DNA of 64,000 nucleotides from Podarcis vaucheri (GCA_965113315.1 OZ220368.1), one strand, 5' to 3'; shown: positions 2,039 to 60,583, numbered from the stretch's first letter. The notes: generated from the sequence alone by a model not told the origin. Made by a program: numbers and translations.

Positions 2039-10894
<8,856 letters not shown>

Positions 10895-19400: not shown

Positions 19401-20171
19401 AGGGCTGGGGAGGGTGTCAAATGTTGCCCAGGACCAACAAAACAGGCCTTGAGGGCTACATGCAGCCCTCAGGCCATTCATTGGACCCGGTTCTAGGCAG
19501 CACACAGGGAGCCATGACCTGTGCTCACGTCAATTCAACAAGAGGGGAGCTATTTGAAAGTACCGTATTTTTCGCTCTATAACACGCAGATTTTTTCTCC
19601 TAAAAAGGAAGGGGAAATGTCTGTGCGTGTTATGCAGCGAATGTGTGGTCCCTGGAGCCGAAAAATGAGGCAAAAATCAAACCGCGCTTCAGGGAGAAGG
19701 GAGCTCCGTGAGAGAGGAAGCTGTTGCTTTCCTGCATTCTGCCTCAGGGTCTTACCGCCCACCCGCTTCTGTTTCCTTGCTGTGTTTGCTCAAACGGAAC
19801 AAAGAGCAGGGAAAGCCCCTCCCCTCCAGGCAAGAAGAGAGGAAAAGCAGAGCGTCCTTGTCCTTCGTTCTATCCTCTCCCTGCTCCGGAGGGAACAATG
19901 TTTGTGAAGGGAAGAGAGATTGCAGGTTCGGCTTAAAATTCTGATTTGACTTCCTGCTTTTTGTTTTTGGAGACACACAGCATTCAAATATGCTTTCTTC
20001 CATTTAAAAGGATGAAATCCTTAAACAGTGTTTTGCCTGTAAATTCATGCGATCTGGAAGATTACAGTGTCTGTACCTCTTAAGGGATGGCAAAGCTTAG
20101 GTTTCGCTGCTAAATAGTTCTTAATGCAGTTAAAATGCTTTCTTCTGTCATGCTGGTGGGAGGGAGAGGGA

Positions 20172-20202
<31 letters not shown>

Positions 20203-23200
20203 CACGCTTGTGTGGGTGGGTGGGGGAAAACTTTTGCCTTCCTTTCCTCACGTTATAGCCCTCTCCTGCATTCTTAGCCTTCTGTGTTTTTCCTTCCTCC
20301 CCACTTAAAATGTGGTTACAAAGCATGGATCCACATGGATCCTCAGGATCTTTGCATTGGGTCACCCCAAATTCACCATCAGAGCACATAGCATGTCCAT
20401 GGCTACAGCCTGTCCCCCCCAAAAAAAAAATCACGCACCCACTGTTGCCTGGGGCTGCAATGGTGCAAAAACGTGGTTAAAAAGTATGGGTCCACATGGA
20501 TCCTCAGGATCTTTGCATTGGGTCACCCCAAATTCACCATCAGATCACATGTCTGTGGCCACAGCATGAAGCACAAAAATGATACGTCCACTGTTTCATT
20601 CAGAATATTTTTTCCCTTGTTTTCCTCCTCTAAAAACGATGTGCGTGTTATGGTCAGGTGCGTGTTATAGAGCGAAAAATACGGTAAGTAACAAATGCAG
20701 AATTTCAGGTTGTGACTGAGAGATAGTAGAAAGGTTTGAAGGGTGTGAAGGGATTCTCCGATAGGGCAACATGGTACAAACAACTCCAGCATGAGGAGTT
20801 TGAGAGCTTATCCCTTACTAGCCAGCCTGTTCTAATCCGTGCCTTCACTGAGCTATTCATTGGTTACACAGGGCTAAGGCAGGGAGCAAATCCTCAGGCT
20901 AGGGTTCCAGCAGGTGCTGATCCCAGTGCTCACTCGGATGAATGCTCACTTTGAACTTGGAGGTGAGACATAATCCCAGCCTCAGGCTATGGACTGGACA
21001 CACCATAAAAAACAAATGCACTAGCAGGACTGGCATTCTTGATAGAGGCGCTCAGCAATGTGATTCCTGCATGATGTAAGGGAGCTATGTGGGAATGACA
21101 AAGGCTATATGATTGAGACCCAAAGAATGGGAATGTAAGGCTAGAATTAATTCTACAGATAAAAAAGACTAGAGAGACACACAAACTGACAAGCTACACT
21201 TGAATGGGGAGCGCAAGTTACAGATGGAGGTGTACGTTGCAAACATGTGTTTGGTACAGGTTATTTTTGCTGGACATTGGCCATCTGAGTGGCAATCATG
21301 TTGAAGCTATACTGGAACTGCCAATTAAATTGCATTGGAGCTGATATTTCCTAATAAGCATTTCTGGAACAGTCACCCTTAAAAGGCAAAGGGAGAAAGA
21401 ATACTGTGTCACTAGTGTAAATATATAGTTTAGTCGCTAGGTGGCACTGGACTTATTTATATCTGAGTGGAATCAGAGATTTCCCCCATCCTGTTCTTGT
21501 TAAGAGAGACAATCAAGTTATTGTCTAGCCTCCTAACTGATTTGTCCCATGAAACTCTAAGCCTCTCGTAACAAATAGTTATGGCTTCCTCAATCTAGAC
21601 TGCTTTGGCCAAAAGATGATGTAAAACTCACCCATTCCGCACACATAAATACCACCAGGCACATCAGTTGGAAACTAATGGGCTCATTCTTATATCAAAT
21701 AGGCTTCAGGTCTTAATATAGTCTGCTTGCTTTTCTTCTATCCCTACTACCTGCTCCCCCTTAACTCAGCCCTTAATTCTCTCAAGTCCCTTCTCTTCCA
21801 ATCTCCAGTACCTGCCCTCCTGCGATGCCTTCTGCTGTAGGCCAATTAGAAGAAGGCGGATCTCCTCCCTCACCAGCTCCTTGAGGTTGGGGGGAGCTGC
21901 CAGCAAGGCCCAGCTGTCATCCGCTTGCAGTGGGCTTTGCTCCACTCCAAGGCGGCCTGACTGCAACTCCTGATGGAATTCCAACAGTGTCCACACCTGT
22001 AAATAGGGAAGGGGTTGGACTGCATTAGGGACAGTGCATTGCCACATGCAGAAATTCACACATGTGCACATTGGCACAAACTGCAGTAACTTTCTCAAAG
22101 TAATCTTTCCCCCACCCTCCACCTCCCCAAATGATGAAGCACTGACACAACCTAAAAATACAAGTTGCACTCCCATTCCCAGTATTGCTGGGAAATCAAG
22201 CCAGGTGCCTGCCTGCAAGAAAAGAAAATCAATACCTAGCCATGGTTTAGTTACTCACCTGATGGTAGACAATTACATTTCCTAAAGGCCACAGTCAGGG
22301 AACTGACAACTTTTCAGAAGTATGTCATGCATCAAGGAAATAAAAGATGCTTCAAATGTGATAAATGTGTGTGAGAGCACACTGAATTCAGTAAAACGTT
22401 GCATCCGCCGTAAGACTTGGAACAGACTATGAGGCTATTAGTTTATGTGAAGAGTATTTTAGGATTAAGAGTGAAGTTTTTAGGTTTTAAAAAAACAACT
22501 CTTTTGCAGAAAGTGGGCAAAGTTGCCTGCAGAAGATAAGAACACCAGCCAGGACACTGTCATTCCAATGTAGCTGGCAAGAGGGCACTGCATTGTTGCC
22601 GTCTGTACACTCCATAAAAGGTGCAAAGCTGCAGACAGCCCACCCACAATCATTCTCTCCCTCCCCCCATGAGGAAAGTCAAGGTCATGCCGCAAAAATA
22701 TCTGCAGGATATTTGTAAGGCAAGCGAGCGCCAGAACTCCCTTTCTGGCCCCACACATCCACAAGAGGAACGTTATGGTACAGCTGCTTCCCTGGGCGGC
22801 CTCTCAGATATCCAATTGGGGAGGGGAGCAGAGACACAGCAGGGACAGGCAGTACCTGGGCCACATTTATCAGGCTTGTGATGAAGGTGTAATAGACAGC
22901 CAGGTGAGAGAACCCATAAAGGCTGGGGAGGGGGTCACTGGCCACAATGGGGGGGGCTGGATCTCAAGCAAAGCTCTAACATGAAGAAGTGATAGAGAAA
23001 GGTGCCATCTTGTCAGGGTGTGCTGTGCTTGCTCTTCTGGTTTCAGGAGGAGGTAAGGCAATTACCATGTGAAAAGCCTCTGGGATGTTTACTGTTCTTC
23101 TCAGCTGCAGTCAGGACCATGCTGAATAAAGAAAGGGCATGAATGCTGGAGGAGAACAAAGGGCCTGGAATAGCATGGATTAGGGGCTCTGGCCAAGCAT

Positions 23201-23892
23201 TAGGAACCAGCTGAGCTGGGAGCTGGCAAATGGGGACCTTGTCAAACAGGGAGGGGGTGGTTGCAATATTTTATCCCCTCCTTGACTTGCCTTCTCAGAT
23301 ATGCTTTCCTTTCACTGAAATTAAACAGCACTCAAAGCAGATGTAAGTGGCAAACCAGAGGTTTTTTCCATACACACATGAATGCTACTCTATATGAAAA
23401 TGCATGTATGCCAAAACTAGTGGCCAGTGCTCAGTGGAAGGGGGCTTAATACAATTTATAAGCCCTCCCTTAGTGCCGCTCAATTTTAGCACTCAGTCCA
23501 CTCCACTCCACTCAATCTATAGACATGAAAGGCAGGCCCTTTCATCAGTCAAATCCCCTTACAAATTTAGTGCTGCCTCTTTAGCTGATGAGACCTAGAT
23601 TTTATGCTTTATTCAGATATCGTTTTGTCACCAGCCACTTCTAAATTGTGTAGTAAGAGGGGTGATTGGTTTGTTTGTTTGTTCTGCTCTTTTGTGAATC
23701 ATTTTGAATAGGAGATCCAGTATTTCGGTACTTAACCTCAGCATGAAGTTCCAAGCTCCGTTCCACAAGGCCATGACCCAAGATAGCTTTTGCCTCAAGC
23801 CTCTCACTGGGTGCTAATTGTTCCTCTACCATTGTCCAGAGTGATGGTATGGACTGCAAGGATTCCCCAGATGCACCAGGCAAGGGCAACAT
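13435..23892 (-). CDS. CCDC24: Coiled-coil domain-containing protein 24, ~383 aa
   Basis: Coding exons in transcript order: 23892-23737 (ATG; exon acceptor at 23922), 21996-21812, 18937-18830, 17022-16936, 15967-15913, 14593-14524, 14314-14194, 13804-13435 (TAG). 1152 nt, all GT-AG, phases consistent. Motifs [101 protein letters not shown] match mammalian CCDC24 as I recall it; synteny supports the call. Confidence 0.9.
14905..15045 (+). mobile_element. CR1-like LINE 3' fragment
   Basis: ttaagcagaggctaaatggccacttctcagggatgctctag...ggctggagtagat resembles degenerate CR1 3' ends. Confidence 0.45.
17290..18260 (+). mobile_element. Degraded, internally deleted L1/Tx1-clade LINE ORF2 fragment in a CCDC24 intron (antisense to host)
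   Basis: Frameshifted motifs IKITDHAPV (endonuclease C-terminal SDH-type), [43 protein letters not shown], then [22 protein letters not shown] (C-terminal Cys-rich region); A-rich sense strand. Confidence 0.8.
19563..20684. mobile_element. Tc1/mariner-superfamily non-autonomous DNA transposon
   Basis: Perfect 26-bp TIR CCGTATTTTTCGCTCTATAACACGCA; TA TSD at 19561-19562 and 20685-20686; internal ~90-bp direct repeat (~20311-20409 / ~20472-20565) and (GA)n. Confidence 0.9.
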
Positions 23893-24266
23893 GGGTGCTG
23901 TATCCGATTCCACGATAATGGGCTTTAAAGGAAAAAAAGATTGTGCCAATGAGACAGTGAGTAGAAGCTCCACATCACAACTATTCGGTGCCACATGCAA
24001 TGGTGCACCTAGGTAATTTTAGACACTGAACTTAATTGTTTTACACATGGGCTGCTGCCCTCCCAAGATTCACAAATATTATTGAAAAGCATTGAAAGTA
24101 TTCAATTATCTGAGGTTCTGCCCCCCCCCAACAGAAACCTGGCCCTCCGCAATGTCCTATTTATGAGGTATTTTTACCCATGATTCCCCAAGAAAAGCTC
24201 AATAACTTTGTCCCTCCCCAACTAAAATCCTGGCCACATCCATGGTTTTACACCCCTCTCCCATTA

Positions 24267-25744: not shown

Positions 25745-25860
25745 TTATTATTATTTATTTGTACCCCGCCCATCAGGCTGGGTTTCCCCAGCCACTCTGG
25801 ACGGCTTCCAACAAAGATTAAAAATACATTAAAATGTCACACATTAAAAACTTCCCTGAA
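25745..25860 (-). mobile_element. LINE (L2/CR1-like) 3' end fragment
   Basis: (TTA)n tail next to taccccgcccatcaggctgggtttccccagccactctgg; a shorter related copy at ~31015-31060. Confidence 0.55.
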
Positions 25861-25959
25861 GTTTGTATTCTGAATGTCAGGTAGTTGTTTATAGCCCCAA
25901 ATGTAACCTATTGCCCATTATCCCTCCCCATAGTTGCTCCCCAGTGCTTAACTCACCTA

Positions 25960-27240
25960 CGTCCCGGCCCACCGAGCCCACTTCCGCCCCAGACCTTTAA
26001 CTCTCCCCACACTTCCTCACTCCCTACGGACTCACGGACATAACTCTGCGGTAGCCCTCACCTGCGACACCGGGCGGAGGGGCGGAGGGGCGGAGGGCCA
26101 GGCGTCTTGCCCTATCCGAGCCCCCTCCACCCTTTAACTCTCTGGAATATAAACTCGCCGTCTCCATGGTAACGCCCCGCCGCGTTCCTCTGAAACCTCG
26201 CCTCTTAAAGGAGCCGTGCCCACGAGGCAGACAGGATGTCGGTCGAGCGTGGAGACGGGCGTCCCGGGGGAAGGAAGCGTGCGCGTTGAAGCTCTTGGCG
26301 CGCCCGCGCTTGCACCCAAGCAATCGGAGGTAAAGAGAAGCCACACGTCGGCCAGTTTTCATCCAGGAGGGGTCCCACTGGCTTTACGCTTTGGCAACAG
26401 TACAGTATTGAGAAACTTCTTTCTTTGCCTCTTAATGTTCCTAGGATTAAGATGGGGGGGGGGAGGGAGAGATCCAGCGCCGCGCGTGTTTTGGAGGCCG
26501 CGGAGACTGGGAACTGGGGAGACGCAACTTTCGCTGCCCGGATGAGTGTTCGAGGGGTCTGGAGAGGGAGCACAGTGGACTTGTCTTAGCAGGCTTTTCC
26601 TGAGGTGCAGATAGGGGGCCAGCTCCCTCCCACCGCCCCGGTCCCGCCCGCTCCGTTGGGGAGGGGGTGCTGTGCCCCTGGGCGGGCTCGGGTTGCAAGA
26701 AGGGGCGGGCCGGGCCGGGCGGCGGCTGCACAAAGGCCGAGAGGCACGCCAGGGCGGTTCTTAGCCGCAGCTTCAGCAGGCAACCTCCCGGCGGGACCCC
26801 GCGGGCGGCGTTGGGGCGGACTGGATGCCCACTTTCCCCGCCAGCTCTCCTCCGCTTCGTTTCCCTACTGCTGCTGCTGCTCTGCTCCTCCCTCTCGCCA
26901 ACTCCCATGCCCGGCATCTGTCCCTCGAGTTCAGCGATGCCCTTTCCGTTGGCACAGCTGAGCTTAGCGCTGCTGCTGCTGATTCTGGTGCCCATCCCAG
27001 GACTGGCAGGGCCAGTGACCACGTGCGATGCCAACGGGAGCCTGTACTACGTTGGGGAGTGGTATTTCCTGGACAGTGACCACTGCACCCAGTGCGAGTG
27101 CACAGCGGAGGGGCCTGCCTGCGCCCGCACGGACTGCACCGCTCTGCCACCTGCCTGCATTCACGTCAGCCACTACCCCAGTGACTGCTGCCCACGCTGT
27201 GAAAGGGTTGGCTGTGAGCACCGTGGACAAGTGTATGAGC
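25960..27240. promoter_or_regulatory. CpG island / bidirectional promoter for CCDC24 (-) and the VWC2-family gene (+)
   Basis: High GC and CpG density; tandem GC boxes gggcggagg at ~26072-26097; candidate CCDC24 non-coding exon-1 donor CAG|gtgagg at 26062/26061 on the minus strand; VWC gene ATG at 26907/26937. Confidence 0.8.
26160..26173. promoter_or_regulatory. RFX X-box motif
   Basis: GTCTCCATGGTAAC (reverse complement GTTACCATGGAGAC) fits the near-palindromic X-box consensus GTNRCC-AT-RGYAAC. Confidence 0.7.
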
Positions 27241-30200
27241 TGGGGCAGCATTTCCAGGTAAGGCATTTACGGGAGAATTAGGCAAAGTGGGGATGACATG
27301 AGAAGGAATCTAGAGCGAGGTGGGCAGGGATGGATAGGTGATGGATGGGCAAAGTGAGGATATTCTAAAGCAGGAGAAAAAGCGAATGCTCTTGAAAAAG
27401 GCACTGTCTAAGAATCGCAAGCGGTCACTTCTGTTTCTTAAATCTTGTTCTGAAAGGGAGGCCTAGGCAGGAGAGTAAGAGACTGGAAGCAGGAATGGCT
27501 ATCTCTTTATGGTTTGTTCATTACTGGCTGAAGCAAAAGAAAATACAAACAAAACTTTTCTAAAGTGGGTGAGAAGCACCAAATCAAAAGTGCTCTATGA
27601 AGCTGGAGGTGCTCTTAAGATGGTCCCATAAAACCAAAGTTTTTTGATAATTCAGAAGGCAATTTTATTGGCTGTAGTACCTAGCTGAGCATCCTTTGAC
27701 TAACTGAATTACATTTTCATCCATTTCTTAGGCCTGACATTGACCAGTTCAGCACCTTGCTTCTGGCTATTGTCTGTTGCTGCCAAAAATGTGTGTAGTT
27801 TATTTTAGGACTTGAGTCAGACCAAACAATCTCTAGCATGGCTGACTTGGACAATTGTGGGTGGATGGGGAAAGGAGTATTTTTGGCACTAAGCCTGCAC
27901 TAGCCGAAGGGAGTCAAATTCTAGCCCTGAGGCTGCAGGTGGAAGATCAAAGACCTCCATTCCTGGGCTCCATGCCTCTTTGGATAGCATGAATTGAGTG
28001 TTTGCAAAAAATAAGTGTATTGATGAAGAAAGGACCAGTTGCTACATATAGTCAAAGAATGGGCAGTGGGGTTCTTCCTAGGTGAATTGTCCGTTACCTA
28101 AACATCAAATTATTGTGTGATGACTTATCTCTTGGCCTGTCCCATTTACCCAAACACAAAATTCTGTTGAAAGGTACACAGAAAGTACCGTACTTTTCGC
28201 ACCATAGGACGCACCTTGTTTTAGAGGGGGGAGAACAAGAAAAAAAAATCTCCCCCTCTCTGCCCAGCGCCCCTTCAGCGAAGCGGCAGGAGGCGCTGCG
28301 CAGCGAGGGGGAGAATTTCCCCCCTCTTGTTTCCCCCCTCTAAAACAAGGTGCCGTTTAAGTTGCGTTCAGTCGCCTTAAGGCAGCTACCTTGGAAGCCT
28401 GGAGAGCGAGAGGGGTCGGTGCCCACTGACCCCTCTCGCTCTCCAGGCTTCAGGTTCCTTTCGACCTGCTCTTTGGGGCTGGCGGGGGGAAGCCCACCAC
28501 CAGCCCCAAAGAGCAGGTTGGGGAGCAGCGGAAAGCTTCTATGGCTTCTTTAGCCCAGCATGCGCTCTCCCAGCTGGAGAGGTGGCGCTCGACTAAAGAG
28601 GCTCCTGCCATAGCAGCGCGTCGTCTCTCCAGCCGGGAGAGGGTCACGGGGGGCTTCTTTAGCCCCGCGCGTGCTCTCCCGGCTGGAGAGGTGGCACGCG
28701 GCTAAAGAGGCTCCTACCAGCCAGGAGAGGGTCGCGGGGCTATGGCGTCTTCGCTCCATAGTACGCACACACATTTCCCCTTCATATTTGAAGGGGGGAA
28801 AGTGCGTCCTATAGAGCGAAAAATACGGTAAATGCTTTCTGCAAAGCCATATTGAGCCATATTTTCCCCCCAAATAATAACTTTATTATGTCCAACCAAA
28901 ATATCATAAAATAGCAAGCAAGCTTTTGATTATCCAGAACCATTCAGCTGGGGCCTAGCTTGCCCTAAAATACTTTGCTCAGCCAAAGCTTCTCAGTTCT
29001 TTACTAGGGATGGCCAGATTTTGCTCTAGGTCCATAACATCTGGGTTGTAGATACAGTAATATAGGGCTGCTTCCCAACACTTCCTGGAACTAGGTTATC
29101 TTGCATTTGCTTACAAGCAAGACAAGTGCTATAGATCTAGAGAGAGAAAAGTTCTGTAATTAGGAAGGGTAAACACTTTCCTTTGTACTGTAGGTTTGTA
29201 GTACGAACAAGATATCAACTTGCCAGTGAAGTTGTGCAATCTCCTTCCCTGGAGTTATAAAGATGATCATGGACAATTATATCATTAAGATATGATTTTT
29301 GGTGTTAAATGTTGATGTCATCTTCCAGTTTTGTTATTTTAAAGTATTGTGTCGAGTGATCTAGAGCAAGTGACCAATGTTTTTATCTGCAACCACTTGA
29401 GCTTCAGTGGAGACCAGTCTTTATCATCACCCACCCTGAAGGTGTGAAATCAGACAACCAACCTATTAGTTCAGGAGGGAGGGAATTTGACAGAAGGTAG
29501 AATCTTGGAACTTTCCCCTTAGGGCAGAGAACAAAAGCATGTGGCTTGGCTAGAATTAGCCTCATGTTTTGCAAGTGAGAAGGTGAATGAGAGGTGAGGT
29601 GCTGAAAATGACTTCAGTCTCCTTTGCTGGATATTTTAAGGAGGAGCTTGATTGGGTAATGGGTTCCAAAACACATTCATGGGCCTTTTTAGCATATTGG
29701 GATCCCTGATGGTTCTGCGCTACTGGGGACAATCTTTCACTCACTCAGAGTTTTCTCTATTCAACATTTTCTTATGACCAGTCAGTTTCCCCAGTGACCA
29801 GCCGCATGATTATTTGAGAGTAATCTTGAGTTGGCCAGAGCTGACAAGATACACAAAGTCAAGGGAGATTGGGACAGAAGCTTTTTCTCCCTCAATATCT
29901 ATCAATTCTTGGTTGATAGTGCCATCTGATGGTATAATCCCAGTACTGCCATGGCTATGCATTCAGTTTGGAATGCTTCTTCACACATTACAAAAAAAGG
30001 AAGATGATGGGCCTTATATTTCTTTTGTGATCACTCCTTCCCCTGATACTTAAAGCACAGATACAGGTAAGCAAAGATGCAGCCAGGAGCCTAATCCAAT
30101 TAAGTATCTGAGGCATGAGTTTCCCACCTGCTTGCATACGCACATCTCTTTTTGCAAGTTACAGACAAAAGACATGACTAATTCATTCTGGAACTGCAAA

Positions 30201-31353
30201 ATCCAGTCAATTCTGCAACATGGTGGTGTGGGATGGATGGGTAACCTATTTCTCTCAGCCTAATTTTATTAGGAGGAAAAGGGGGAGGGAAACAGGGTAG
30301 CAGAGGAGGTGCCCTACCTACTTTGACTCTGGACCAGCACACCACTGGCATGCAATTCTGAACAGATTCCCAAGGGAATGCAATTCTCAGAAAAGAATAA
30401 GCTTCTGCACCACTGATGCAAAATAGTTCTGGAGCTGCATCATCATCATCATAACCGTGTGCTGTCCACGTAAAGCTGCCTTGCTCTATTGACCAATATT
30501 TGTCTCTCACAGCCCTCAGAGTGTGAGCAGTGTACCTGTGACCTAGATGGCATCGCTCGTTGCCTAGTGGCTGACTGCGCCCCTCCGCCCTGCGTCAATC
30601 CAGTCTACGAGAAGGGCCACTGCTGCCCCACCTGTGAGGATGGTGAGAAAGACACACCTTCACAGCAAGGGACAAATGTTCCACTTCAAGCTGTCCAGAA
30701 GGGGGAGAGAACTTTGTCTCCCTTGCCGTTCAGGGCCCCTGTCCTAATGGAGCAGGGAAGTGAGAGGAATTGAGCCAAGCTGATCAGACACAAGCTTGCT
30801 TAACTGAACAGGAAGCCTCCTACTTAGAAATGATGGGGACACACCTGGTAGCCCCCACCTCATCTTGAAGGATTTGGCAGGTGTTTAGCCCTAGTGTTAG
30901 AAGAGGGGTCCCCCCAAAATGAAAAATGTCCTCCTGGTATAAAAGCAGCCTCTAGCACAGAACCTCTGCATGAGATGAGCTCTCCGTAGAGGATAGGGGT
31001 ACAAGGAGTAATAATTATAATTTTATTATTTATACCCTGCCCATCTGGCTGGGTTGCCCCCACCTACACATGTACTCTTAAACTGCTTGCCATTTCTGCT
31101 TCTAAGAGTCATGATGAGACTTCTGCAAACAATGGTAGACTCTGATGCATGGACATGTCTCTCCACAGGGCCCAACTGCTACGTGGATGGGAGCCAGCGA
31201 CACGTCATTCCTGCTGGGGAGAGCATATGGGTCGGGCCCTGCACCCGTTGCCGCTGTCATGATGGCCAGGATGCCGGTTACTGGGAAGGAAACCGCTTAG
31301 CTAAATGTGAGCGGCTACGGGGATGCCGGGCTACAGGTGCACATCACACCTGA
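26937..31353 (+). CDS. Secreted von Willebrand factor C domain protein of the Brorin (VWC2/VWC2L) family, distinct paralogue; 211 aa (221 aa from the in-frame upstream ATG at 26907)
   Basis: Exons 26937-27257 (CAG|gtaagg), 30513-30642 (G|gtgaga), 31169-31353 (TGA); 636 nt, phases 0/1 consistent. Signal peptide MPFPLAQLSLALLLLILVPIPGLAG; VWC1 and VWC2 each with 10 Cys ending CCPxC; 6-Cys partial third module. PSECEQCTC..CLVADCAPPPCVNPVYE..CCPTCEDGPNC..IPAG closely parallels VWC2L. AATAAA at 31828-31833. Confidence 0.9.
28188..28828. mobile_element. Tc1/mariner-superfamily non-autonomous element related to 19563-20684, opposite orientation, in intron 1 of the VWC gene
   Basis: TIRs ccgtacttttcgcaccataggacgcac / gtgcgtcctatagagcgaaaaatacgg; TA at 28186-28187 and 28829-28830; internal hairpins and tandem repeats. 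Confidence 0.88.
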
Positions 31354-31827
31354 GCTGCTCCAAACACCAAACAATTCCTGGGCCAGCCATTCTTCAGCAC
31401 CTGCAAGGCTTCTGCTTATCCAGACAAGCCCTAGTGTGCCCTTACACCCAGCCCTGGCCCAACTCCTTCAACCATACACATAAGCAATTGCCAGTCGCAG
31501 CCCCCTTTCCAGATCTACCCCCTTTCCCTTGACAATGTCTAGAGTTATTACGCAGGGGAATAGCTCATATGAGAAAGCCCGTTTTATTTAGGATGGGTGG
31601 GCAACCTGTGGCCATTCAGATATAGTTGGACTCCCAGCTCCCATCAGCTGTAGCCAGCATGGCTAATGGTTAGGAATAATTTAGCCACATCTCGAGAGCC
31701 AGAGGTTCCCCATATGATTTAGGGAATCACCCCTCAACCACCACCACATTCCCACTCCAGCTTCAACTTCAACTAAACATAGCATCTTTTGCTACTATTT
31801 AACAGTTTTTCTCTGTGTGTGAGCATC

Positions 31828-31833
31828 AATAAA
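31828..31833 (+). terminator. Poly(A) signal of the VWC2-family gene
   Basis: AATAAA about 475 nt after the stop, followed by U-rich ttctctcttgtcttctg. Confidence 0.7.
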
Positions 31834-32086
31834 AGAACCTTGTAGAAGAGTTCTCTCTTGTCTTCTGGGCTGAGTAACTACGCCCAGAGTTTCCTGGGCC
31901 AGAAAACCCAGTCCCTGCTTTAAACAAACTTGTTGGGGAAGCACAATGAGGTGCCATTCATTTGGAAACAAATTTAATTCTTAATTTTGTACCTTGCCAA
32001 GATAGATTGCATAAACCTGCAGTGTTACCTCTATCCACAGACCCCACCTGAATCCCATAGGCAAGGAGTCTCCCAAGTTTTGAAAC

Positions 32087-36400: not shown

Positions 36401-39400
36401 AAAATTTGCAGGCACATTAGCCGCTCCACAGCAGATTCAGCCAGCCAAATAATTCCAGGGTGGGGATTTTTTCTGTCAGGTATCTTTGAAATTTGATGGT
36501 TATTTTTTTAAGCAAACTTTCCCCCCCTTCCCCACTATTGGATGAAATTTGCAGGCATCAGAGTCTCCAAGAAAGATGAATCCTGTCAAATTTCTGAACG
36601 ATAGCTTCATTGGTTTTCCCACAAGGACAGCCTTCACAGTTTGGGGATGGGTAAAAAGTGTCCACTTAAACTTCCCATGTCTTTTGAGGGCAATTGTTCG
36701 GAAAGCAGACATGAAAGAAGTTTCCCTAGGTATGAAACTTGCCAATGGCAGACAAATTGGTTCAATTTTTGTGAAATAAGGACTTTTAAAGTTGATCTTG
36801 GGGTTCAGGGAACAGAACTAAAACGGATTTCCTTTCCTCCCCACAAAGCACTGGGGTTGAAGACTCCAGGTGAACTCATTCCCTCTGGTTACAAGCTTGA
36901 CCTGTCAGTCACAGCAGAATTCCCCCCCCCCCATTACCCTGGCATTTGTTCTACTTTTCTACTTCAGCCATTCCACGCCCCTTCTGCTTTCCTTATACAC
37001 TAAAGTTAGCTACATTAGTTTTGCTTTCAGCAGACAATTGTCAGAGTTGTCATGGTGCCATGAGGCATTTTGGGAAATCCCCACTTTGTCTCTGGATCCC
37101 TGAAGAGGTTCCACTTTGTCTCAGACCATCCCAGAATCTCTGCAAATCACCCTGCTTTGGCTGGGGATTCATCCAAAGCTGTTGTATATCCCCCACTTTT
37201 AAGTACAAAAACCCTGCAAATTATGAAGAAATGTGACATGGTAGTCTTAAGAATGGGGGAGGTTCCTGTACTGCAATCTAGATAAGAAACACATTTCACA
37301 GCTTGCAGGTCCCCACAAGGTCCAAGCCAACACAGAATGAGAGCACATATGTGTGCAATAAAGTCATATATTCCTCATTCCATTTTGCCTCTGACACTCT
37401 GAACAATTTCAAGGGGCCACTGGCATCTCAAAAAAGATCAAAGTGCACAAACTCACCGGAAGCCAAACTTATCCATGGCAACAGCAAAGTGCCGGGGTTG
37501 GTCATAACAGCGATAGAGATTCCGGTCATCCATGGGCACCAGGTCAACGTCGCTGAAGATGAAGCAGTCATAGCTCTCATCATCTCGAAGGGCTTCTAGG
37601 AAGCCCACATTCAACAGCTTAGCTCGGTTAAAGGTGTCTTCACCAAACTGTATGGAAAGATAATGAAGGGCGGGGTCACATCAACTGCCATGACCCTCTT
37701 ACTCTTTCTTACCTGATGCAGCTGGCCGCCCTCTCTCTTGAGGAGGAGGAGTTTGGATTTGATATCCCGCTTTATCACTACCCGAAGGAGTCTCAAAGCG
37801 GCTAACAATCTCCTTTCCCTTCCTCCCCCACAACAAACACTCTGTGAAGTGAGTGGGGCTGAGAGACTTCAGAGAAGTGTGACTGGCCCAAGGTCACCCA
37901 GCAGCTGCATGTGGAGGAGCGGAGACGCGAACCCGGTTCCCCAGATTACGAGTCTACCGCTCTTAACCACTACACCACACTGGCTCTTGTTACATTTCAT
38001 TGTAAATAGCATTCTATTTTTCCCCTATTTTTTTCTAGAACTGTTCTATCTCCCTTTATAGATCTTGCAAAGTCCCATCAACTGTATTTCAGGTGTATCG
38101 TCATGTCAGAGAGCAGGCCTGATTTTTTTAAACGAGAAGCAAGTGAGAAGCATCTACATCACATTCCACACTTACCATGGGTGCAAAGTTCATGGTGCAT
38201 TGTAAGGCCCACACTCTGCTTCCCCCACAAAGCAGGAAGCCTTTGCTTCCAATCAGAACAGAGAGGCATATATTCATGAAAACTAACATACCGCTTTCCC
38301 TAATCAGGTTCCTCTCAAGGAAACCGGATGGCACTATGTTCTAAATCCAACCATCTTGCTCTCTTCCACATCAGTGGTGCCATTGGGACAGAACTTTGGG
38401 TCAGATATCCAGGCCCTACTCCTTCTGCTTTGGAGGACAGCAGGGCTGGAACACCATATTTTGAAGTAATGCACATTACCATCTGAAGGGGATATCAATG
38501 AGACCATTCAGTCCAGAATGCTCAATGACCCAACTGCACCACTGCCCCCACATTATCATTTTCTACGCACCTGGTTAATTATATAGATGCTGTAAGACAC
38601 CTTCTGGCGCCGTAGAATCGGGTGCAGGTAGTGCAGCCAGTACTTGAGGTGGTGCTCCCGGTGCCGGAACGGAATGAGGATGGCCACCTTCTGGCGAGGC
38701 ACACAGTCTGGGGGAGAATACTTGCCGCCCTCCCGCACATCTGGGTTTTCCCGTTGCACCCGCTCCATGCTCATGGGAGTGCTGAACTCGATAAGGAGCC
38801 GGCCCACTGCAGGAGAAAGGACTCCATTATCTATGCATCAGCCACGGCCTCTTGACTTACACAAACAGCTCATGTCCCTTTCACTAGCCAAGTTGGCGGG
38901 GCACTGCCCAGAAAAAAATCAGCAAAGAAACCTAAAAACCGAAACATGTATCAAGCGTAGAGACAGCAAACAGTCAAAGCAGAGTTAACTCGAATACCCA
39001 GCTAAGTGATTCAGAGTTAACAGGAAAGGTTGTTGCTCATTGCAGATTGCATTGTTTAATAAAAGTTTTAGCCCCAGTTAAATATCAATACCAAAGCTTG
39101 TGCTTCAACTCTTTATCCACCTGTCAGGAATAAAGGTATTAAGTTCTCTATGCCTTAAATGTTTTACCCCCTAGGGTGAGGAGATGGTCTACTTTGGTCT
39201 TCACCAACCCAGTGCTCTCCTGATGTTTTTGCGCTACAAGTTTCAGCAGCAGCAGCCATGTTATAGTCCAATACATCTGGAGGGCATCAGGTGAGTGAAA
39301 GCTGGTCTACTTCATGCATTCATTCGAAGAGATCAGCATAAGAAGGAGCTAACCCTTGTAGCCCCTACTAAGCCATGTCTGTGCAGAAGCTGAGCCCTTT

Positions 39401-40155
39401 CCCCAATTACTTGTAGCCCACTTGCAGAAAGGCACCAGCTAGGTACAGTGGGGCTGGGAAAGAGACAAGGAGTTGCCATGGCAAAAAAGGAAATAATAAG
39501 TCCGCTATCTGATCACTGTAAATATACTAAGAACACTATTCAGTTTGCCAGCTTTCAACAAATACTGTCCACATATTCCCAACTGCTTTTCCACTGCAGG
39601 ATTGGCTCCAATGGTGGAGGCTATTGGAGCCTATGATTTGCAATACCATGCCTATTCTGCAGATTCCTAGATCTTCTAGTTCCTATTATCAGGAGCCAAA
39701 GCCACTTGACATATTTGCATTGACAGGGAAACAGCAGGTGGCAAGCAGGGCACAAATAAACCCAATAACTGCAATACAGTTTCCCCACTAAAGAGCCTTC
39801 TGTAGGACACGGCATGAGGCAGACAGAGCTCATCTGTAATCTTACCTAGGCCAGGAGGCATCTCTGGGCAAGGTGGTAAGGGCTTCTCGGTGACAGTGCT
39901 GTTCATACTGACGGACTTCACACTCGGGGCCAGGAGCTCAGGGCCCAGAGGCCCGGCGGTCCCATTAGGCCGAGAGACGTTGACGTAGGGCAGAGTGCGG
40001 GAGGAGTTGCGCATATTGAAGCGGCTGAAAAAGTCCAGGCGCTGGGCGTAGACATCAAAGTAGAGGATCATGATGATGAGGAAGTGCAGTAAACATAAGA
40101 GCAGCACAGCTTTGCAGATCCTCTCCAGGGTCACTCCCACCAGCAATCTGCTCAT
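33474..40155 (-). CDS. B4GALT2: Beta-1,4-galactosyltransferase 2, 371 aa
   Basis: Coding exons 40155-39846, 38806-38571, 37647-37457, 35805-35683, 35273-35169, 33624-33474 (TGA); 1116 nt. MSRLLVGVTLERICKAVLLLCLLHFL type II anchor, IPFRHR, FNRAKLLNVG, SDVD, YWGWGGEDDD motifs; synteny with ATP6V0B and CCDC24. Confidence 0.97.
33727..33863. mobile_element. Short hAT MITE (family of 5612-5747)
   Basis: TIR caggcttcctcaac / tttgaggaagcctg; imperfect 8-bp TSD gaatagag / gactagag. Confidence 0.85.
34633..34982 (-). mobile_element. Sauria SINE (Squam1-type)
   Basis: Reverse complement closely matches 24267-24640; 13-bp TSD gaggtgtagagta at 34620-34632 and 34983-34995. Confidence 0.92.
37740..37987 (-). 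mobile_element. Squam3-type tRNA-derived SINE
   Basis: On minus: agagccagtgtggtgtagtggttaagagc (A box), gggttcgcgtctcc (B box), gggtgaccttgggccagtcac core, (CCT)n tail. Confidence 0.8.
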
Positions 40156-46700: not shown

Positions 46701-47499
46701 AGAGAAGCCCATGGGGAAGCTCTGGGAAAGGTAAGTGGATGCCAGCCAAGGGTTGCTGTTGTGTGTGTGTTTATTCCTCTCTTCTTCTTTTTTGCAAAAC
46801 TGATCCAAAAGACAGCAACAAGGCCATTCTGTTCCACACAGAGCACACAGCCTGGTAAACATATACAAGCTCCATTATTTTCCGCCTGGGCTGCCTTGGC
46901 TGTGAGGCCCCTCGTTCCTAAAAGCAGCTGCCCCTTCCCTTTTCCTAAGAGAAAGGCTACATTGTTTCTCCACGGATCCCCCTGCCTGGAACAGGAAATC
47001 CCCCGTCTTGTCAGGAACCTCAAACGGGTAGAAGAACCTCAAAAGTGAGCCGGCCCAGAGGCGGAGGGGCTGAGAAGAAGCTTGTGCAGCAGGTGCCAGA
47101 GCGCCCCCCTCCCCAATTCCCAGGCGGCCCAGACACAGCCCCAGCCTTTCTCTGCTCGAAGAAGCGCCTTGGGGATTGTGCAGGAGCCATCTTGGGGGAG
47201 GGGGAGCGAGGCTGGCTGGGGGAGGGGCTCAAGTGCCAGCATCCTAGAGATACGCGCAGACAGCCAGCCAGAGGCACACCTTTACTCTCGCCCACGCACC
47301 TGCTTGTAAACAGACATCCGTGCACAACTGTTATCTAGAGACACGCATCTACGCTGCACACCACCGAGAACTGGTACACGCGAGAGCATCCATCCGCGCC
47401 TCTCGACACACCTATGTCCAAGCCCATCGGTCCACACAATGCCCAGTTTGCCCAGGAGTGGGTGATCAGACGAAACATGGCTGAGGTGCCGGAGGAAGC

Positions 47500-48260
47500 G
47501 CCCCGCCTGGGGATGCGCCCCTGAACCCCGGAGGTGGGTGCAGGTGATGGAGGCGCCGAGAGGAGCCGTGTGAGGAAGACCTGCTGGGAACACACCCAGC
47601 CCCTTCTCCACAACAAAAGGAGGCTGGCGGCCGCAAAGGCAGGGTCTCTCTCTTCGCCCACCCGCCCGCCCGCCCGCCATGGGTGCAGCCCCTCTGGGCG
47701 CCCCGCGCCCGAGCAGCGGACTCCCTCCCCGGCTCGGCCCCGCTCGCTCCAGCTCACCGCCTGCTCGTTCCCGGCCGCGCCGTGCGCTCGTGGTGCCGCT
47801 GTCTCTCGGCGCCCGGGCCGGGCGGCTCAGGGGACGGCGCGGCGGCTCCCCCGGCCCCAGCCCAGCCCGGCCCGGCCTCAGAGCGGGCGGCTGCCCGGCC
47901 AGCTGCAACAGCGGCTCCTGCGCCCCATCCCGGGCAGCACAGCGGAGCCCAGTCAGGACGATGAGCGGCGCCCACACCGGGGAGCGGATCAGGCCTGCTT
48001 GGGCGCGCCGGCAGCTCCGCCTCCTGCGCGCTCAGCGCCGCCCCTGCCAGCTCCGGCCAGCCATTCCCATCCAGCCCGCTCCCCGGGCCGCTGTCTCCGC
48101 CGCCGCCGCCCTCGTCAGCCCCGTTTAGTGCAACAGGACGGGGGGCTGCTCTCCAAGAAGTCACGTGTCAGATTAGGGAACGCGGAGAGAGCGTCTTCGG
48201 GATTGGTGGAGATCACAGGTTCCTCGCCGGCTCTCAGTCCCGATCAGAGGAGAAGATCCT
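47500..48260 (-). promoter_or_regulatory. CpG island promoter and non-coding first exon of B4GALT2
   Basis: Very GC/CpG-rich; minus-strand donor GCG|gtgagc at 47758/47757 could splice to the acceptor at 40222; E-box GTCACGTG at 48160-48167. Confidence 0.75.

Positions 48261-54966: not shown

Positions 54967-60583
<5,617 letters not shown>

Follow-up and report, generated by a model that had tools for sequence, protein, structure and literature searches.

The window analysed here is a stretch of 64,000 nucleotides from Podarcis vaucheri (GCA_965113315.1 OZ220368.1), with coordinates counted from its first letter; on its plus strand it carries a three-exon gene of the Brorin family, i.e. the family of VWC2 (Brorin) and VWC2L (Brorin-like). 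Coding exon 1 (26907-27257, +) gives the VWC2L_1st match and encodes a predicted signal peptide, VWC domain 1, with 10 cysteines and an NGS N-glycosylation sequon, and the first 15 residues of VWC domain 2, ending in phase 0 at ...CAG/gtaagg with the donor GT at 27258. Intron 1 (27258-30512, +; 3255 nt, GT..AG) ends in a polypyrimidine tract and cag that directly precede coding exon 2 (30513-30642, +), which runs from cag/CCC to ATG/gtgaga, supplies the rest of VWC domain 2 and ends in phase 1 on the G of a Gly codon. After intron 2 (30643-31168, +; 526 nt, GT..AG), the coding part of exon 3 (31169-31353, +) starts at cag/G, encodes a 6-Cys C-terminal module with a clade-specific GQDAGYWEGNRLAKC loop and closes with the stop codon TGA at 31351-31353; the 3' untranslated region (UTR; 31354-31847, +) has an AATAAA at 31828-31833, with transcript contigs ending at 31836-31847. 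Translation of the concatenated exons gave a reading frame open across all three, with intron phases 0 and 1.

Two in-frame ATGs are available, that at 26907 giving 221 residues and that at 26937 giving 211 residues. The NCBI models of lacertids (Podarcis) start at the first; the second has the better Kozak context, with G at -3, and coincides with the start in snakes (MPFPL). The N terminus of an agamid orthologue, from Phrynocephalus (P0004; ...SLEFSDAL...), fits the +2 frame of the window (26825-26960) rather than the lacertid frame, reflecting either a frameshift in the start region between the lineages or a mis-annotated model. A hydrophobic stretch, LAQLSLALLLLILVPIPGLAG, lies ahead of VWC1 and is modelled as a lone helix of low confidence; VWC1 begins 5 residues past the predicted signal cleavage site. 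Searched exon by exon, the translations match VWC2L_1st (1.8e-14, 53.8 bits), VWC2L_2nd (4.7e-10, 40.0 bits) and VWC2L_C (6.8e-17, 61.6 bits), in that order and all above the Pfam gathering cut-off of 27 bits for the three domains. Downstream of the signal peptide there are 26 cysteines (10+10+6), the first of which is immediately followed by the NGS sequon.

The region 26000-26906, to which no strand is assigned, comprises a CpG-island promoter and 5' UTR, with a GC content of 0.61-0.68 and a CpG observed/expected ratio of 0.65-0.87 (both over 26000-27000), and RNA-like contigs enter its upstream part. Those containing exon 1 reach about 415 nt (X1 record 1) and 769 nt (X5 record 16) before 26600; as the contigs are unstranded, this upstream part (about 25830-26906) could represent a long 5' UTR or divergent overlapping transcripts of a bidirectional promoter. 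The original prediction for this locus, made from the sequence, had described three clean GT-AG exons, two 10-Cys VWC domains and a 6-Cys module, an NGS sequon, a dedicated AATAAA and a CpG-island start, with VWC1 directly after the signal peptide without an acidic region and with a distinctive C-terminal segment. Coordinates, splice sites and cysteine counts were all recovered as described; the acidic region appears as a gap in the family alignment, which also reveals the C-terminal segment as a clade-specific loop plus a 3-residue insert.

Expression and selection were considered using sequencing runs, of which 24 were found; those compared over 26600-32000 were three RNA-like runs from three studies (X1, X5 and X9), all of one sister species with an identity of about 97-98% to the window, and X19, a DNA-like run probably from the source organism itself. 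Both predicted splice joints, 27257/30513 and 30642/31169, with GT..AG ends, are present in each of the RNA-like runs (with flanking sides of up to 132 nt at 30642/31169), and neither is present in X19 over that interval. Contigs end just past the AATAAA, at 31836 (X9 record 28) and 31847 (X1 record 7). Counted over the mature coding part, 8-9 synonymous and 1-2 non-synonymous changes separate the sister species from the window, giving a ratio of non-synonymous to synonymous rates (dN/dS) of 0.03-0.06 (Nei-Gojobori site counts per exon), far from the value of about 1 expected of a relic. The amino-acid differences in X5 (S9P, I26T, I30V and H172R) match the Podarcis muralis protein one for one, which identifies the sister species as a Podarcis and the window as that of another lacertid. 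The gene is thus intact, spliced and under purifying selection.

Homologues were sought in a collection of 5.8 billion proteins, using exon 1 in the open frame from 26604, with scoring on residues 135-218. This search returned 68 proteins of 62-98% identity from geckos, agamids, snakes, a turtle, caecilians, frogs, many teleosts, gar and sharks, some of the teleost matches being labelled zgc:113531. A second search, with a divergent turtle protein as the query, chosen to favour archosaur matches, added lungfish, rays, sturgeons and further turtles. No mammal, bird or crocodilian copy is among the named matches of either search, while short Logan fragments (e.g. P0076, which is turtle-like) may include crocodilian or bird sequences. 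According to cluster listings, the gene is annotated in more than 100 species as 'VWC2-like', zgc:113531 or LOC541359, including Anolis carolinensis (XP_008107712.1), tuatara, sea turtles, axolotl, Pleurodeles, Protopterus and zebrafish (NP_001013504.2, recorded as 'uncharacterized protein LOC541359 precursor'). On database proteins, it is a pan-gnathostome gene, found in sharks, rays, sturgeon, gar, teleosts, lungfish, amphibians, tuatara, turtles and squamates, and mammals appear to be without it.

The suggestion that the gene was retained in reptiles and lost in mammals is consequently only partly sustained: no mammalian copy is among the named matches, but the distribution, from sharks to squamates, is not reptile-specific, and birds and crocodilians also gave none. 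Likewise, we found no paper on the gene, including under its zebrafish name zgc:113531, and a literature search on loss of VWC2/VWC2L in mammals returned nothing relevant, in agreement with its description as probably uncharacterised; it is, however, already annotated in the many species referred to above, with a 221-residue model in Podarcis itself.

Conservation across this range is strong. The window exon translations are identical at 207-208 of 210 positions to the Podarcis (muralis and lilfordi; 221 residues) and Zootoca proteins, and so the predicted gene model is the RefSeq model of close relatives; exon 2 alone is identical to the lacertid proteins at 43 of 43 positions. Compared with Phrynocephalus P0004, exon 1 is 94% and exon 3 is 90% identical, and lizard sequences agree with those of shark or teleost at 64-71% of positions across the full protein and at 74-85% within exon 1. 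The C-terminal signature was found in 132 fetched proteins. Among 96 full-length clade members, 91 keep all 26 cysteines and 88 keep the NG[ST] sequon, turtles and one shark having lost the latter. The turtle orthologues (P0066, P0404-P0412) are rich in GC and in Ala, Pro and Arg, have VWC1 at 67% compared with 90% or more among squamates, lack the sequon and are flagged by the tree program as deviant in composition. Their divergence may reflect GC-biased evolution and may give a clue as to why copies in archosaurs could be missed.

To place the gene, a comparison set was assembled from a phmmer scan of 1.84 billion representatives, cluster names and a search with bird VWC2L; it contained VWC2L of mammals, birds, turtles, squamates, fishes and sharks, VWC2 of teleosts plus a mammal-type sequence, a group typified by si:dkey-283b1.7 (ray, bichir and teleosts), six cyclostome proteins, and Ciona and mollusc outgroups. 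For tree, alignment and fold analyses, the window protein was represented by near-identical database proteins (P0389 and P0004; 94-99% identical to the window exons). In a maximum-likelihood tree (IQ-TREE, LG+C20; 48 proteins, 228 columns), the clade of the gene, comprising 15 rows from shark to lizard and including the stand-ins, has support of 99/98, and its sister clade (100/99) unites VWC2L (100/98), VWC2 (100/99), the si:dkey-283b1.7 group and all of the cyclostome copies; the window gene thus lies outside the VWC2L clade. The cysteine columns are invariant across 41 aligned family members. Three indel states are common to the clade and Ciona, with the other state present in VWC2, VWC2L, the si:dkey-283b1.7 group and the aligned lamprey copy: C-x-x-C-x-C versus C-x-C-x-C in VWC1, HYPSDCC versus H--NGCC, and RV--GC versus EVKNFC. 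It is likely, judging from tree and indels, that the split of this lineage from that of VWC2 and VWC2L is older than the duplications that gave rise to those two genes.

The intron positions indicate common descent with VWC2L, because both positions and phases are identical: read-through open reading frames (ORFs) of VWC2L break at EEFK/PSPC and KNG/PNC, and the window gene at QHFQ/PSEC and EDG/PNC. The earlier impression that exon 2 and the start of exon 3 track VWC2L closely did not hold, as identity to VWC2L and VWC2 is 38-43% and the gene branches outside the two. Describing it as the third member of the family was also an undercount, in view of the si:dkey-283b1.7 group, which is sister to VWC2 (97/91). 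Members of this fourth group (P0148, P0136, P0130, P0111, P0231, P0232 and P0234) come from ray, bichir and teleosts and are likewise mislabelled 'VWC2-like'; no tetrapod member was seen in the comparison set.

An acidic region with a D-Y-R-G-K-G/W motif is present in VWC2, VWC2L and the si:dkey-283b1.7 group, and is missing from both the window protein and Ciona; because Ciona also lacks it, this region may define only the other clade. The Ciona protein (P0088) and a 341-residue Logan protein (P0092) carry a C-terminal W-A-G-[NS]-x-x-A-x-C loop akin to the YWEGNRLAKC of the clade, which suggests that the long loop is ancestral and that the 'WWKPAQC' of VWC2L is shortened.

AlphaFold2 modelling of the Podarcis lilfordi protein, which is nearly identical to the window product, used an alignment of 41 sequences and gave a mean predicted local distance difference test (pLDDT) score of 83, exceeding 90 over residues 41-190 and dipping to 60 in the clade-specific loop. 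Foldseek matched the model to the tandem VWC domains of NEL/NELL2, the VWC domain of collagen IIA (5nir; root-mean-square deviation 2.6 Å over 58 columns), CCN3 (5nb8) and the complex of Crossveinless-2 (CV2) VWC1 with bone morphogenetic protein-2 (BMP-2; 3bk3). A family-profile search of PDB sequences gave chordin (9rd6, 1.9e-5) and CV2 VWC1 (2mbk/3bk3, about 1e-4) as the best matches, together with collagen IIA and NELL2, and no solved structure of a Brorin-family protein is among those sequences.

Taken together, the results make it highly probable that the window gene is the lacertid orthologue of a Brorin-family member of ancient origin that is functional and has so far escaped study, known as zgc:113531/LOC541359 in zebrafish and mislabelled 'VWC2-like' elsewhere. 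Several points weigh against this reading or parts of it. The absence from mammals, birds and crocodilians is based on annotated proteins rather than genome searches. The runs with spliced sequences were guessed to be RNA, are represented by contigs rather than reads, come from a sister species and are of undisclosed tissue. The statistical rejection of a union with VWC2L is moderate rather than overwhelming, and the root depends on four long outgroup branches with support of 92/79, for which reason the clade probably, though not certainly, branches first within the vertebrate family. With respect to function, the protein lacks the acidic, DYRGKG-containing N-terminal region that is common to VWC2 and VWC2L, and its conserved N-glycan sequon is at the very start of VWC1, where the CV2 clip contacts BMP-2.

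Chordin-type VWC domains are classic BMP binders, and in Crossveinless-2 an N-terminal clip at VWC1 contacts BMP-2. In the reading adopted here, the gene is transcribed from the CpG island, probably shared with CCDC24, its three exons are spliced and the transcript is polyadenylated after the AATAAA at 31828; after removal of the signal peptide, the product would be a secreted, disulphide-rich protein of about 186 residues, predicted to be N-glycosylated, with two 10-Cys chordin-type VWC domains followed by the 6-Cys module. By analogy with Brorin, Brorin-like, chordin and Crossveinless-2, the favoured reading is that this protein binds BMP-type ligands extracellularly via its VWC domains and so alters their access to receptors. 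Brorin and Brorin-like are secreted BMP antagonists, Brorin being expressed in neural tissue and its gene having two coding introns (PMC5407822); both proteins are also found in AMPA-receptor complexes, where their role is unknown (PMC6502786), and a screen of receptors showed binding of VWC2L to CD36 (PMC9578707). We consider the chances of BMP binding of some kind by the window protein to be evenly balanced and regard net BMP antagonism as a tentative proposal, somewhat less probable than binding itself; that it associates with AMPA receptors would be a guess from its relatives.

A possible, though on balance unlikely, alternative is that this is a real secreted Brorin-family protein, the main task of which is other than BMP antagonism, e.g. 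a CV2-like pro-BMP or shuttling role, partnership with a receptor such as the AMPA receptor or CD36, or binding of other TGF-beta-family or unrelated ligands. Because the N-terminal region is missing and a predicted glycan falls at the CV2-type clip position, the protein could take another ligand or promote BMP signalling, and the glycan alone means that ligand choice could differ. The same direction is indicated by the other conserved peculiarities of the clade, i.e. its 3-residue insert and GQDAGYWEGNR loop, which accompany the clade-specific N-glycan site at the first cysteine of VWC1, and by its deep divergence from the two studied members, of which VWC2L binds CD36 (PMC9578707) and both co-purify with AMPA receptors in a role that is unknown (PMC6502786). 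On the other side, the PDB proteins to which VWC1 is most similar, CV2 VWC1 and chordin, are classic BMP binders, and both studied relatives inhibit BMP signalling (PMC5407822). More doubtful is a broader version, in which the clade would represent an ancestral-type branch that predates the two rounds of vertebrate genome duplication (2R) and retains Ciona-like indels. In this version, the N-glycan at the BMP-contacting end of VWC1 and the distinctive loop would direct the protein to a ligand or receptor other than that of Brorin (pro-BMP, non-BMP or receptor-associated), and independent losses in mammals and archosaurs would have led to an entire extracellular signalling modulator, present in fishes, amphibians and lepidosaurs, being overlooked, because mammalian models lack the gene.

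The proposal that the locus holds a relocated VWC2L (or VWC2) orthologue, and hence no additional gene, has some initial appeal, given the NCBI name 'VWC2-like' and the three Pfam domains and intron positions shared with VWC2L. It is nevertheless very hard to reconcile with the evidence, and we reject it. A separate, true VWC2L is present in the squamates Anolis, Pantherophis, Sphaerodactylus and Varanus and is 90-92% identical to bird VWC2L, compared with the 38-43% identity of the window gene to VWC2L and VWC2. The well-supported clade of the gene already includes sharks, the indel states differ, and forcing that clade together with VWC2L costs 26.5 log-likelihood units (approximately unbiased (AU) test, p 0.027). 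The claim of a separate paralogue, distinct from both VWC2 and VWC2L, is thus upheld. Finally, that the gene is a decaying or silent relic, a chance ORF or an annotation artefact, for which the sole argument is that this species has not itself supplied RNA reads, can be dismissed with similar firmness, given a frame open over three exons with canonical splice sites, spliced contigs in three studies, the low dN/dS and a 26-Cys framework kept from sharks to lizards.

The surroundings of the gene confirm the location given in the original prediction, i.e. inside a B4GALT2-CCDC24 block, both neighbours being identifiable by Pfam in the window. The gene is head-to-head with CCDC24 across the CpG island, which the two probably share, and tail-to-tail with B4GALT2. 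The divergent upstream neighbour is represented by CCDC24 coding exons at 21769-24000 (-), with a Pfam CCDC24 match (3.8e-10) on 21769-22218; an ORF at 23641-24000 (-) resembles what we take to be the CCDC24 N terminus. The convergent downstream neighbour is represented by 5' coding exons of B4GALT2 at 38559-40155 (-), with a Glyco_transf_7N match (3.3e-31) on 38559-38807 and an ORF at 39676-40155 (-) encoding the N-terminal membrane anchor. A second strong GC peak (0.68), at 47000-48000, precedes the first coding exon of B4GALT2 (-) by about 7 kb and is possibly the promoter or a non-coding first exon of that gene. Farther out, Pfam identifies an SLC6A9-type exon at 2048-2323 (+) and an ATP6V0B exon at 55745-55990 (-).

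Intron 1 contains an insertion of 641 bp at 28188-28828, without assigned strand, that resembles a miniature inverted-repeat transposable element (MITE) and is bounded by 27-nt terminal inverted repeats (TIRs) at 28188-28214 (+) and 28802-28828 (-) with 0 mismatches. The TIR, CCGTAYTTTTCGCNCNATAGGACGCAC, has 4 matches in the window, with 0 expected by chance, and also bounds a second element at 19563-20684, which is MITE-like or DNA-transposon-like. The family of the intronic element is of very high copy number, with a summed depth of 36,000-236,000 in the DNA-like run X19. A sister-species contig from X5 skips from 28184 to 28828, and hence lacks the element in that allele, which implies that the insertion is young or polymorphic.

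Studies of Brorin and Brorin-like, whether as antagonists of BMPs in the developing forebrain or as unexplained secreted components of AMPA-receptor complexes, have assumed a two-gene family, because mammals have two. Our results reveal at least four gnathostome lineages. One of them, which zebrafish, Xenopus-type frogs, axolotl and lizards possess, is deep-branching and very strongly conserved, with 26 cysteines and an identity of about 70% between shark and lizard. The 'VWC2-like' label is misleading and hides the gene from orthology-based analyses. The gene is not new to databases, in which it is only mislabelled, nor does it represent a system of a new type; mammals have often lost paralogues, and the degree of surprise is limited for that reason. 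Redundancy among family members has already been suspected in zebrafish (PMC5407822), and knock-down and knock-out phenotypes in that species need to be read with an extra family member in mind; zgc:113531 itself is a ready target there.

Comparison with known systems shows both shared and differing features. In CV2 (BMPER), as in the window gene, only a few residues separate the mature N terminus from VWC1; CV2 and chordin are, however, large multi-domain proteins, and the likeness to them is one of fold and profile. VWC2 shares the core architecture and cysteine framework, but differs in having an N-terminal extension of about 130 residues (310-326 residues in total), in an identity of about 38-39% and in belonging to the other main clade, with the si:dkey-283b1.7 group. 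VWC2L has the same layout of predicted signal peptide, two 10-Cys VWC domains and 6-Cys module, the same three Pfam VWC2L domains, the same intron positions and phases (phase 0 at F[QK]/PS and phase 1 in the Gly of G/PNC) and a similar size (222 residues compared with 211-221). It differs in its acidic DYPADE...DDYRGKG region before VWC1, which the window gene lacks, and in its chromosomal neighbourhood, which is other than the CCDC24/B4GALT2 setting of the window gene. The latter, in turn, has C-x-x-C-x-C in VWC1, two further indels, a conserved N-glycan sequon, a 3-residue insert after G-P-N-C-Y-x-D in the C-terminal module and a longer C-terminal W-loop, HDGQDAGYWEGNR[LV]AKC. The closest counterparts are zgc:113531 and the fish, amphibian, turtle and squamate 'VWC2-like' models, which belong to the same clade, are 64-98% identical, and have the same length, 26 cysteines and the YWEGN signature. 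They form a group without a proper name, of which the window gene is a further orthologue with no essential difference; the window gene carries the traits of this clade, i.e. the YWEG[NS] loop, the 3-residue insert and the C-x-x-C-x-C of VWC1.

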